DNA of 63,806 bases, filler included, from Reticulomyxa filosa (taxonomy: Eukaryota; Protista; Foraminifera), in the NCBI GenBank assembly GCA_000512085.1. It is 20 parts of 20 records of this genome, joined end to end, with 100 filler letters (N's around TTAATTAATTAA, not from the genome) between each part and the next. Parts side by side here need not be neighbours in the genome. Positions count along the whole stretch, not along the records: positions 1,148 to 5,261 come from ASPP01026815.1; 19 more parts are not named here. The stretch is one strand, 5' to 3'. Each line of letters starts with the position of its first letter. Positions within the stretch are counted from its first letter, which is position 1. Positions 1,148 through 5,747 of this stretch are shown here, piece by piece. Both the position numbers and the translations under genes were made by a program. Below the pieces are notes generated by a model. That model saw nothing but the letters and a program-made list of their open reading frames with translations. It was not told where the DNA came from and did no database searches.

Positions 1148-1223
1148 GAAAAAGAAATAATCAAAAAGACAAAAAAAAAAAAAAAAAAAATATTCAATCA
1201 ATCAAAAAAAACAAACAAATGAA

Positions 1224-1883
1224 GTGTTGATGGGTGCATCAATGGGCGGTGCTGTGGCAATAATGGCGGCGAAACATTACAAAGAACGCATTCAAGCGAT
1301 TGTTTGCGATTGCAGCTTTTATTCATTGCGTGAAATAATAGGATATCGATTGAGCAAGTGGAACTTCTTTCCCGTGGCCCTCATTCCCTCTTGCTTGTAT
1401 GTAATGAATCTGATGAACGAGTTTGTGTATGGCTACAGCGTCGATGATATCTCGCCTATTCGTGTAATCACCGACAAGGACTTTGATATCCCAATGCTGT
1501 TTGTGCACTCATCTAACGACTCGGTTGTTCCAATGAAACACAGTGAGTGCATGTATGACCAGTGCAAAAGTGCAAAAAAAGATTTGTGGATCATTGACGG
1601 CATTGACCATTGTGGTGGGTTTTTTTATCAACCAAAAGTCTTTGTCACGAAAATTACCAATTGGGTGGACAATGTGTTGGAAGAAGAAAAAGGGCATCAG
1701 AACCACAACAAATCATCTTCATCTTCATCTTCATCAACACTGCCATCCCAATCACAACAAACATCGTCCCCAATTCAATCCAATGACACTCCGACGCCCA
1801 TTCCTGAGGACAATACTTCCAATAACAACTCAAATCTTTTTTCTTTGATTGGAATAAAAAAAAAACAAAAAGAAATTGTCTGA
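1224..1883 (+). CDS. Alpha/beta hydrolase (YqkD/ABHD-like), 3' exon
   Basis: Nucleophile elbow GASMGG, PMLFVHSSNDSVVP (catalytic Asp) and IDGIDH (catalytic His). Ser-rich tail. 5' part lost at the contig edge. Confidence 0.9.
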   Translation: MLMGASMGGAVAIMAAKHYKERIQAIVCDCSFYSLREIIGYRLSKWNFFPVALIPSCLYVMNLMNEFVYGYSVDDISPIRVITDKDFDIPMLFVHSSNDSVVPMKHSECMYDQCKSAKKDLWIIDGIDHCGGFFYQPKVFVTKITNWVDNVLEEEKGHQNHNKSSSSSSSSTLPSQSQQTSSPIQSNDTPTPIPEDNTSNNNSNLFSLIGIKKKQKEIV

Positions 1884-2678
1884 GTGTCAAAACTGCAACA
1901 TATACTCTAAAGGGAGGAGGGAACAGAGAGGGGCAAAATCAATATATCAATACATAACTGATTCTTTGCTTTGCATCATACCAAGGGCTTCTTTTTGCAT
2001 TTTTTGCAATTTGAATTTTTTTGTTGTTGTTGCTGCTGTTCTGTTGTGCTGCGTTGCGGTTTTGAAACAATATAACTGTTGCTCCACTGTTAAACACCAT
2101 TGTTCCGTTTGCCTTGGTCGACATTTTTAACACTTCGTTTCTTGCTTCATTGTTTCCAAATATATTTTAGTTTTCTGTATTTCGTGTATCTTTTAATCAT
2201 CATACATTGTATTACCTTGCTTTTTAGTTGCGTTTCTCCTTCTCTGCTTGGCATTGCTCAATATTTACTTTTTTTTTGTTTGCTCATAAACGCACTTTTA
2301 GAATGTTATGACAATGCACACTTTGGGCAAGATGCAAATTAACTGGCAAAGTGTAGAATCGAACAAACAAAATTCCTTTTAATTTTTGGTTGTTGTTTAG
2401 CATACCAAAAATATCATCTTTAATAATCAATCTATTGATAAATATCTACATTTGAACTTTGTTGGAAATAGCACTGTCAATAGCGCCTTGATAACACAAG
2501 TTGAAGCTTCAAGTTTCAGTCAAGCATCTTAAATAAGCTATGCCATTTATCAGCAACCAAACAATTGTAATTAAAAGAAAAATATTTCATCAAATCTGTG
2601 TTGTATGAAACTGACAAAACAGCAAAAAAAGGGCATGTGAACTTTTAGCATAATCCTTTATTGATTTCAAATTAAAAG

Positions 2679-4668
2679 ATGAAAGGTTTTTTCAGCACAT
2701 GTCCAGTGTCTAGCTCAACTAAAATCCTAAAAACACAAAAAAGTTATTTTGGGCATACACAAAGGCAAGCTCAGACGGAAAAAGTCAAGACTTTCAGTTC
2801 AAGCAAAATTCCAATTGTAATACCTACAAATAATGCGCCCGTGCACTTGTACACTTCAAGGGTTGAGGAAAAGGCATTCAGTCAAGTGTTGGCGCTTGCA
2901 AATTCTGGTAACATTGATTACAGCTGTAGTTTTTCTTTATTTTTTTTTCATCCAGCTAAAATCAATAAAAAAAAAGATCGACAATCCAACTCAAAAAAAA
3001 AAAAAAGATATTCCAGTAGGTCCTTTGGCCATTATGCCCGACGTTCATTGGGGGAAGGGAAGTGTCGTTGGTGCAGTTTTCGCATGTAAGGATAAGATCT
3101 GTCCAATGGCCGTAGTTTCGTGTGCACTTTTAAATGTCCCCTTTTTTCGCATGATTTGTGATTGGAAGGGAGAGAGGGATGCTTAAGAAAAAAAAAAATT
3201 GAGGTTGCTTCTTCTTTTTTTTTTTTTTTTTTTTAAAAAAAGGGAGTCGATATCGGTTGTGGAATGACAGCAGTCCGAATAAAAGATATAAGTCACAATG
3301 AGATAAATGACAACCAGTTGGAACATCTGCAACAACTGATAAAAGAGCGTATACCCGTGGGGTTCAATTCGCACATAAAACCCCTGAGAGACAGCGACGT
3401 GGCATTGAAGAAGTGTTGCGAGCTCCATTCACCAAGCAATTGGCTGCACCGATATTTGAGAAAGGACAACATGGTGGCCAATCAAATTGGGACATTAGGC
3501 GGAGGCAATCATTTTTTGGAAATATTGTACGAAGACCAGTTAGCAAAGGATAAAACCGGAAATATCATGTTACCAAGCAATGAGATCAAATCTCTCTCTG
3601 AAAGTTTAAATCATACAAAAAGTTTGTGTTTAAGAGAGAGAGAGAAAGAGAGAAGTGGAGGGGATAGAACATTGGAAAGGGGGGGGGAGGGGAGGAAAGA
3701 ACAGAAATAGACAGATTATTTGCACAATCAAAATATATGAAGAAAGGACGAAACCTGCAGATCCAAGACCGGTTTGGTTGATGCTTCATAGTGGTTCACG
3801 ACGCGTCGGTAATAAGACGGCAGAGTATCATGAAGGGATAGGGATTCGAAAGTACAAGCGCAATAGCGATCCGCTGGCCTGGCTTCCTATTGATAGCGAT
3901 GATGGCCAAAATTACTTAAATGACATGCGCTGGTGCCAAGGTTCTTTCTCTCAATGACGTGGTGTGTGTGTGGACGTGATTGCTTGTTTTATCTTTTCTT
4001 ATTTGAATTTTATTTTATTTTATTTTTTTTTTTTTGTATACGTATATATGTATTTGTGTGTATATTTGATATTCATATTTATATTTATATTTGTATCTTC
4101 TTATAAATATGTGTGTGTGTTTGTGGGGAGAGAATACGCCTATTTAAATCGCGAATTCATGCTGAAGGCGATGGTATCGTGCGTTCAAGACGTATTGAAA
4201 AAAGAACCGGATTGGAACACTTTTGTCACTGTTCATCACAATTATTGCACATGTGAAAGCTGTCGCTACAAAGACAATAGAACTGGCCAATGGCGAGAAG
4301 AGGAACTATGGGTCACAAGGAAGGGCGCCACTAGTGCAAAGAAAGACGAATATGGGATTATCCCCGGCTCCATGGCCACGGGAAGTTTTATTGTCAAAGG
4401 TCTGGGGAATGATATGTCGTGGCACAGTTGCAGTCATGGCGCAGGTCGGCGAATGGGCAGGAAACAGGCTGCGGGCATTTTGTCAACGAAAGAATTTTTT
4501 AACCAGCTCGATGCCTCGGGAGTGGTATGTGATCGTGATGAACGCTTAATTGATGAGTCTCCACTAGCCTATAAAGACTTAAATGAAGTCATCAGACACC
4601 AGACCAATGCAAGTATTATCAAAATTGAACATAGGTTACTGCCTTTGGTCAATGTGAAAGGTTTTTAA
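2679..4668 (+). CDS. rtcB: RtcB 3'-phosphate/5'-OH RNA ligase, bacterial (E. coli-like) type, five exons
   Basis: Exons about 2679-2907, 3008-3114, 3243-3603, 3743(or 3761)-3940 and 4133-4668, joined by GT-AG introns in frame. Motifs MPDVHWGKG, GVDIGCGM, QIGTLGGGNHFLEI, LMLHSGSR, VHHNY, VTRKGA, IIPGSM, SCSHGAGR, DESPLAYKD, VNVKG. Confidence 0.95.
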
Positions 4669-5747
4669 ACTGTAAGATTACTCTTTACTTTGGAGCCTTT
4701 CCAATCAATCATCAAAAAATGTTACCACTTGATCACATTCTCTCCTTATTGTGATTGTTTTGTTTTTCTCCTCATTTTACATGGGAGGATGGTGATATAA
4801 ATTGGCCAAGTTGGGATTTTGCTAGCATTTTCTTCTCACTAAAGATACCCACAAATTTATTTTTGCAAACTGCTCTATGGTAGAGGGGGAGCTCCAACGG
4901 AGCTTAGGGAATCCTCTTTCTAAAAAAAAACAGTGGATTTTCAGTATTCCGAATTTTTCTTTTGTGGAAAGAACAAAAGAGATAATTGTGAAACGACAAC
5001 TTGATGATGCTACTTATGTTAGATGGGATACTTCAAAGACAAAATTTATTTCATTTTGTCTATTTTCAAAATAACAATATATGATCTTATAAATGACATC
5101 TTTAAAATCCTTAAGAAAGAAATGAACTCTAAACTAAAGAGACTGAATACGCACTTTTTTTTGGGTTAAGCATAAGAAAATGGAGGAAAAGTTTTAACAG
5201 TGCTATTTTCATTTTTCTTTTTTTGATATTGGATCATGTTGTTTGCACAAAAAATTTGATCNNNNNNNNNNNNNNNNNNNNNNNNNNNNNNNNNNNNNNN
5301 NNNNNTTAATTAATTAANNNNNNNNNNNNNNNNNNNNNNNNNNNNNNNNNNNNNNNNNNNNTCACCACGAGGTACACATCTTCAACTAAAGCACTTTTCA
5401 AAAAATGTTTTTGTCTTCGAAAAAAGGTTTTCTTTGGCGATGTTTTGCGAAGATAGAAAGCGAACAATTTGCAAAAGTATCTAAAAAAAATTATTTTTTT
5501 TTGTCGCCGAGACGATGCTAGCAGAAATTTTGACAAATAACGAGTTGAAAGAAGATCTCGCGACAAAATGTGGATATATTTTGAGCATTTTTGAATGCCG
5601 AAAAGTCTTTAAAAGCTGAATCACTTATTAAGTGCTTTGTTCGATATACAGTTTAGTAGTGTTCTCAAGTTAAAAAAACAATGTGACACAAAAACGATCA
5701 AAAAAACAGGACATTAGTATAATTGTGCCAAGAGTGGAAAAAAGAAG

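Follow-up and report, generated by a model that had tools for sequence, protein, structure and literature searches.

Five coding segments of an RtcB ligase on a Reticulomyxa filosa contig

The DNA analysed here (the window) is a stretch of 63,806 nucleotides joined from 20 records of assembly GCA_000512085.1, the genome of the freshwater foraminifer Reticulomyxa filosa (PMC7744380), and its positions 1148-5261 are the entire 4114-bp contig ASPP01026815.1. On the plus strand of this contig, from 2679 to 4668, lie five collinear coding segments that translate to successive parts of the RNA ligase RtcB (Table 1). RtcB proteins are GTP- and Mn2+-dependent enzymes that join an RNA 3'-phosphate or 2',3'-cyclic-phosphate end to a 5'-OH end via an intermediate in which a histidine of the enzyme is linked to guanosine monophosphate (GMP). 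A first-pass annotation of this DNA had seen here a spliced gene for a bacterial-type RtcB domesticated in a eukaryote; every RtcB motif that it quoted was located on the plus strand, and this core claim stands.

Membership in the family was established with the single exons, which served as queries and rows in all searches, alignments and trees in place of the joined protein. Exons 2-5 match the Pfam RtcB family (PF01139) with 29.8, 46.3, 41.3 and 164.8 bits, each above the gathering cut-off of 27 (E = 5e-48 for exon 5), and they cover successive positions of the family in order, a series of consecutive matches that cannot be chance. All five exons also align in order to Escherichia coli K-12 RtcB, with 31-55% identity for exons 2-5 (55% for exon 2 and 41% for exon 5), while residues 47-74, encoded by exon 1, pair with the first aligned stretch of the E. 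coli protein and align to the N-terminus of Leptospiraceae RtcB as well. In the E. coli enzyme, Mn1 is held by Cys78, His185 and His281 and Mn2 by Asp75, Cys78 and His168, and His337 carries GMP (PMC8051266). All six of these catalytic residues are conserved in the window protein, in agreement with the earlier statement that the metal ligands and the guanylylated histidine are present, and the 37 invariant family columns of exon 5 are intact without exception. Taken with the phylogeny described below, a functional, intron-bearing RtcB gene that belongs to a eukaryote-wide clade of bacterial type is very probably encoded here. The protein search returned no full-length RtcB protein from contig ASPP01026815.1 among its matches.

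Table 1. Features of the RtcB gene, with matching positions of PF01139 and of E. coli K-12 RtcB (exons: BLASTP).
Feature	Window positions	Strand	PF01139 positions	E. coli RtcB residues	Description
Exon 1	2679-2907	+		5-34	ATG at 2679; ends in phase 1; N-terminal extension and start of RtcB core (IPIVIPTNNAPVHLYT...)
N-terminal extension	2679-2807	+			43 amino acids ahead of conserved core; 8 K/R, 1 D/E, 14 S/T
Intron 1	2908-3007	+			100 nt; GTAACA...AAAAAG; GC 24%
Exon 2	3008-3114	+	13-43	43-71	Contains PDVHWGKG; C-terminal end ...CPMAV
PDVHWGKG	3037-3060	+			Motif
Intron 2	3115-3242	+			128 nt; GTTTCG...AAAAAG; T/A homopolymers; stops in all frames
Exon 3, minimal extent	3243-3538	+	46-161	73-176	Contains GVDIGCGM and GGGNHF
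GVDIGCGM	3243-3266	+			Motif
Asp	3249-3251	+		Asp75	In GVDIGCGM, exon 3
Cys	3258-3260	+		Cys78	In GVDIGCGM, exon 3
GGGNHF	3498-3515	+			Motif
His	3510-3512	+		His168	In GGGNHF, exon 3
Interruption 3	3539-3767	+			Minimal model, 229-nt GT-AG intron; borders ambiguous
Exon 4	3768-3940	+	181-241	180-240	Contains VWLMLHSGSR
LHSGSR	3784-3801	+			Motif
His	3787-3789	+		His185	In HSGSR, exon 4
Intron 4	3941-4132	+			192 nt; GTTCTT...GGAGAG; 56% T; stops in all frames
Exon 5	4133-4668	+	243-426	242-408	Contains HHNY, VTRKGA, SCSHGAGR and C-terminal VKGF; TAA
HHNY	4234-4245	+			Motif
Second His of HHNY	within 4234-4245	+		His281	Exon 5
Clade-specific insertion after HHNY	4246-4299	+			CTCESCRYKDNRTGQWRE; pattern Cys-x-Cys-x2-Cys; alignment A1 columns ~470-497
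VTRKGA	4312-4329	+			Motif
SCSHGAGR	4426-4449	+		334-341	Motif
His, guanylylated in E. coli	4435-4437	+		His337	In SCSHGAGR
VKGF, then TAA stop	4654-4668	+			C-terminus

Introns and the third interruption

The start of the gene is framed by an in-frame TAA at 2673-2675, two codons 5' of the ATG, and exon 1 holds no second methionine. Introns 1, 2 and 4 have GT-AG borders and a GC content of 24-31% versus 39-49% in the exons, and the junctions across introns 1 and 4 preserve the spacing of the family consensus; that of intron 4 reads WCQEYAYLNR, equal in length to the consensus WCQxYAxxNR. An alternative acceptor for intron 1 at 3015-3016 would yield a protein shorter by 3 amino acids, and the acceptor that starts exon 2 at 3008 is preferred because it keeps the family length (LANSDIPVG versus LAESGIAVG). 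For exon 2, an end at 3111 was ruled out, as the conserved valine would be deleted; an end at 3114, with the donor GT at 3115-3116, is more likely because it restores the family consensus PMAVGVDIGCGM with the conserved valine of PxAVGVDIGCGM. The GT-AG borders and the consensus-restoring junctions thus support introns 1, 2 and 4 as modelled, and of the four spliceosomal introns in the first-pass annotation these three stand as predicted introns, with the end of exon 2 moved from 3111 to 3114, while the third interruption is real but has ambiguous borders. The predicted protein would have about 446 amino acids, and more if interruption 3 is partly coding.

Between exons 3 and 4, frame 0 remains open to 3710, 57 codons beyond the minimal donor, and frame 1 is open from 3613, 52 codons ahead of the minimal acceptor. 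The interruption is real, since a frame change is required between 3613 and 3710, but enumeration gave more than 40 GT-AG pairs that restore the frame, leaving the borders ambiguous from sequence. In the minimal model the spacer between GNHF and HSGSR is 12, compared with 13-14 in 121 of 130 homologues. Positions 3622-3760 are purine-rich (A 42%, G 35%), in contrast to the other introns, and a run of nine G (3679-3687) sits where the two open frames overlap. Exactly at this site the closest relatives, P0004 and P0007 (on contigs L002 and L003), have in-frame charged inserts of about 40 amino acids, and Plasmodium proteins have 46-56. On the basis of the purine-rich stretch, the inserts of the relatives and the overlap at the G run, there are two options, a shorter intron accompanied by a coding insert or a 1-nt homopolymer error, and part of interruption 3 may encode a charged loop insert. 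The catalytic motifs are unaffected under every model.

These same features could be taken to mean that the copy is decaying or non-functional, the frame change being a frameshift in a once-continuous coding insert and no intron at all. The two open frames do overlap around the G run, the 229-nt interval is a multiple of three plus one nucleotide, and the inserts of the relatives are in-frame; yet all catalytic residues and the 37 invariant columns of exon 5 are intact, introns 1, 2 and 4 have exact junctions, the frame can be restored with many GT-AG pairs, and the pattern would arise equally, with no loss of function, from a 1-nt homopolymer error of the draft assembly. We regard decay as improbable.

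Long homopolymers recur in and around the gene (3679-3687, 1178-1190, 2993-3006 and 3218-3234; G9, A13-14 and T17). Errors in length are likely at such runs in a draft assembly, and one of the runs coincides with the required frame change. Charged, low-complexity inserts of 36-56 amino acids recur in the loop between GNHF and HSGSR (window 3516-3783), a hot spot for them in two separate lineages, the window subclade (P0004, P0007) and Plasmodium (P0181, P0193, P0199, P0200, P0204 and P0226).

A bacterial-type clade spread across eukaryotes

Thousands of RtcB proteins matched exon 5 or the longer relative P0004 in word-based protein searches. The nearest relatives, at 55-75% identity, are fragments from metagenomes and from one NCBI assembly, and fragment P0041, which is 69% identical, lies in GCA_024449935.1. 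The next tier, at about 44-59% over exon 5, is eukaryotic and includes Chromera, Symbiodiniaceae, Polarella, Perkinsus, Plasmodium, Digyalum, Halteria, Thalassiosira, Cyclotella, Prymnesium, Botryococcus, Coccomyxa, Trebouxia, Mesostigma, Chlorokybus, Cyanophora and Rotaria. By comparison, a search of 185,579 species genomes of bacteria and archaea gave top matches of no more than 40-46% identity.

These identities bear on whether the assembly was contaminated here with bacterial DNA or whether the gene is a very recent insertion from a bacterium. Although its closest characterised homologue is indeed bacterial (E. coli RtcB), bacterial identities of 40-46% at best compare with 50-75% to eukaryotic and metagenomic eukaryote-like sequences; there is no uninterrupted open reading frame but five segments in alternating frames with AT-rich or low-complexity GT-AG spacers, on an R. 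filosa contig; and the flanks are AT-rich with homopolymers, next to a gene with a serine-rich tail. Contamination or a very recent insertion is hardly credible and is already refuted by the exon-intron structure; that the gene is no contaminant the first-pass annotation had also held.

In the tree of exon 5 (147 rows, 174 columns, LG+C20 with posterior mean site frequencies), the window groups with P0002 and P0007 inside a 93-row clade with a Shimodaira-Hasegawa-like approximate likelihood ratio test (SH-aLRT) support of 99 and a stem of 0.56. All 25 named eukaryotic rows fall in this clade, together with a Leptospiraceae subgroup of 12 rows, and on the opposite side stand E. coli RtcB and 46 further rows, 31 of them named bacteria and 15 without a name. 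When exons 3, 4 and 5 were placed as separate rows in a full-length tree, all three fell on the side of the eukaryotes and Leptospiraceae with support of 99. The clade thus extends over alveolates, dinoflagellates included, diatoms, a haptophyte, green, streptophyte and glaucophyte algae, a rotifer and one Leptospiraceae subgroup. The best tree nests the latter among the eukaryotes, but with the eukaryotes held together the log-likelihood falls by only 7 units (approximately unbiased test, p = 0.30), so that a sister versus a nested position of the Leptospiraceae, and the direction of any transfer, are undecided.

Members of this Leptospiraceae subgroup (P0166, P0186, P0228) share about 48-51% identity with the window over exon 5 and, like it, carry an insertion after HHNY with the pattern Cys-x-Cys-x2-Cys; unlike it, they are bacterial, lack an N-terminal extension and have an extra C-terminal domain of about 100 amino acids. 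Most eukaryotic members have the insertion (HHNYCxCExC), as does the Leptospiraceae subgroup; Plasmodium and Rotaria show a degenerate form, and E. coli RtcB lacks it. Judged from the alignment it is a usable marker of the clade, and its cysteines may form a small metal knuckle. With p = 0.30, a eukaryote-to-bacterium transfer is possible for the Leptospiraceae subgroup. Other RtcB copies of Leptospiraceae (L055, L086) are of the ordinary bacterial type.

Spliceosomal-type introns are also seen in the closest metagenomic relatives, at 125-259 of L002 and about 99-151 of L003, and these relatives are therefore eukaryotic too. Their positions differ from those in the window gene, and neither contig has an intron at the position of window intron 4; intron positions are thus not conserved in the window subclade.

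By its trees and signatures, the clade is distinct both from E. coli-type RtcB and from the canonical archaeal/eukaryotic RTCB. E. coli RtcB (RtcB1; b3421, the RNA repair ligase of the rtcBA operon) has the same short architecture of about 400 amino acids as the window protein and shares with it GVDIGCGM, GNHF, HSGSR, HHNY, VTRKGA, SCSHGAGR and the C-terminal VKG, all Mn1 and Mn2 ligands and the residue that carries GMP. In contrast, it is operon-encoded and intronless, lacks both the 43-residue extension and the cysteine insertion, and contains an insert ('PVNVDAKWAELEAGYQW') that the window gene does not have. The trees separate it from the window exons with SH-aLRT values of 97-99, and on this split membership in the E. 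coli-type RtcB1 clade (clade 1 of PMC12699882) was ruled out.

The canonical RTCB (HSPC117; Pyrococcus, human) belongs to the same Pfam family and has the same catalytic residues and chemistry. It works with archease and, in metazoa, inside a five-subunit complex. With 480-530 amino acids it is longer, and it reads GFDINCG in the Thermus and human alignments where the window has GVDIGCG, the E. coli-like signature that the first-pass annotation had pointed to. The human, Pyrococcus and Thermus RtcB chains of the Protein Data Bank (PDB) match the window over only the last ~100 amino acids (E = 1e-5 to 2e-9). Membership in this group was ruled out by GVDIGCGM, the trees and the PDB comparison, and the window protein does not branch inside the canonical eukaryotic RTCB clade.

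A presequence-like N-terminal extension

The conserved core starts at residue 44, which the alignment pairs with the first residue of the Leptospiraceae proteins and with residue 2 of E. coli RtcB. What precedes it is rich in serine, threonine, lysine and arginine and poor in acidic residues, much as described in the first-pass annotation, with a length of 43 rather than about 45 amino acids. Extensions of 15-79 amino acids are present in 25 of the 29 eukaryotic or eukaryote-like members (window excluded), most of them net positive with few acidic residues, but in none of 8 Leptospiraceae-group proteins and not in E. coli RtcB. In composition the window extension resembles a presequence, which is suggestive of organelle import and fits it without proving it, and the chances that the R. 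filosa RtcB is targeted to an organelle appear evenly balanced. Mitochondria would be the likeliest destination, given that non-photosynthetic lineages (foraminifer, ciliate, rotifer and Perkinsus) belong to the clade and that R. filosa, to our knowledge, has no plastid.

Longer extensions, of 69-79 amino acids, occur in some stramenopile members (the diatom-like P0215 and P0161), where they open with a hydrophobic stretch. Here the signal could be a bipartite one for plastids and not a mitochondrial one, and localisation may therefore differ among lineages. A literature search on the localisation of clade members (Plasmodium, apicoplast, algae) found nothing.

The same enzyme might instead act in the cytosol or nucleus, as a ligase for tRNA splicing or general RNA repair, with an extension that is not a targeting signal. 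E. coli RtcB can perform tRNA and HAC1 splicing in yeast (as cited in PMC4931112), the Plasmodium members carry the database name 'tRNA-splicing ligase RtcB, putative', and a nuclear/cytoplasmic location has been predicted for two eukaryotic RtcB clades (PMC12699882). Against this, net-basic, acid-poor extensions recur in most eukaryotic members and in none of the bacterial members of the clade, the pattern expected of import signals, and in Trypanosoma, where Trl1 is the true tRNA ligase, a bacterial-type RtcB is also present and has been reported from the mitochondrial matrix (PMC12699882, PMC4931112). We consider a cytosolic or nuclear enzyme unlikely, although it is the most probable of the rival readings.

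Proposed function and significance

We propose, with a probability of roughly 0.6, that the locus is a five-exon nuclear gene of R. filosa for a bacterial-type RtcB of a eukaryote-wide clade, preceded by a putative organelle presequence. The ancestor of the clade would have come from bacteria long ago and acquired spliceosomal introns afterwards. The basic, acid-poor extension would direct the enzyme to an organelle, most likely the mitochondrion, where it could reseal broken organellar RNAs in tRNA or rRNA repair, or in processing, independently of nuclear tRNA splicing.

Several points weigh against this proposal. A basic N-terminus rich in serine and threonine is suggestive, not diagnostic, of targeting; the nuclear/cytoplasmic predictions mentioned above, obtained with DeepLoc2, concern two of the three eukaryotic RtcB clades in that study (PMC12699882); and if the window RtcB were the sole RNA 3'-phosphate ligase of R. 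filosa, it may have a role in tRNA splicing. Moreover, the splice junctions, above all that between exons 3 and 4, are models, and the G run in interruption 3 could reflect an assembly error or a frameshift.

Precedents for the proposal come from a 2025 tree of 1,183 RtcB sequences, several hundred of them from protists, according to which eukaryotes hold several bacterial-type RtcBs obtained by horizontal transfer (PMC12699882). In that study, RTCB1 of Diplonema and the proteins of kinetoplastids and Naegleria cluster with E. coli RtcB1 and are predicted to be mitochondrial or, in Trypanosoma, reported so. For T. brucei, where Trl1 serves as the tRNA ligase, the function of RtcB is unknown (PMC4931112). 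These RtcBs of Euglenozoa and Heterolobosea (Diplonema DpRTCB1, Trypanosoma RtcB; clade 1 of PMC12699882) resemble the window gene in being nuclear-encoded, of bacterial type and from protists, in having an N-terminal presequence, and in a proposed role in mitochondrial RNA joining other than tRNA splicing. The resemblance does not extend to their position, since DpRTCB1 groups with the RtcB1 of E. coli and Myxococcus (PMC12699882) and has E. coli-type sequence features, whereas the window protein falls in a different clade with alveolates, algae and diatoms.

A bolder and tentative extension of the proposal, which we think more doubtful than the single-gene reading, is that the whole clade represents an ancient, conserved organellar RNA ligase of eukaryotes, derived from bacteria before the supergroups diverged. 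It would be mitochondrial in heterotrophs (foraminifera, ciliates, rotifers) and possibly plastid-located in some algae, would be marked by the Cys-x-Cys-x2-Cys knuckle and would serve archease-free repair or processing of organellar RNA; the Leptospiraceae copies would have been taken back from a eukaryote.

The first-pass annotation had also ranked the gene as a candidate for an undescribed system, and this part does not hold. A lineage-specific domestication is contradicted by a clade that spans Stramenopiles, Alveolata and Rhizaria (SAR), Archaeplastida, Haptista and a rotifer; databases already label such proteins RtcB or 3'-phosphate/5'-hydroxy nucleic acid ligase; and bacterial-type RtcBs of eukaryotes, mitochondrial ones included, are already published (PMC12699882, PMC4931112). 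The family that the gene joins already has members in many protists and algae, and the gene is a useful annotation, not a new system; the advance from this single gene is incremental because of those publications. What it supplies is a gene model for an RtcB ligase on contig ASPP01026815.1, and it adds Rhizaria to a broad bacterial-type clade for which we found neither an experimentally characterised member nor a paper characterising the clade. Should the extensions truly direct import, an organellar ligase dedicated to RNA with 3'-phosphate and 5'-OH ends would exist in many protists and algae, which would bear on how organelles repair tRNA and rRNA cleaved by ribotoxins or under stress.

Other features of the contig

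Rfam and tRNA scans of window positions 1148-5261 gave zero non-coding RNAs. Upstream of the RtcB gene, at 1224-1883 on the plus strand, lies the 3' part of an alpha/beta-hydrolase gene that is cut by the left end of the contig. Its product has a GASMGG nucleophile elbow, matches the Pfam families Hydrolase_4, Abhydrolase_1 and Peptidase_S9, and ends in a low-complexity tail rich in serine and threonine (SSSSSSSSTLPSQSQQTSSP).

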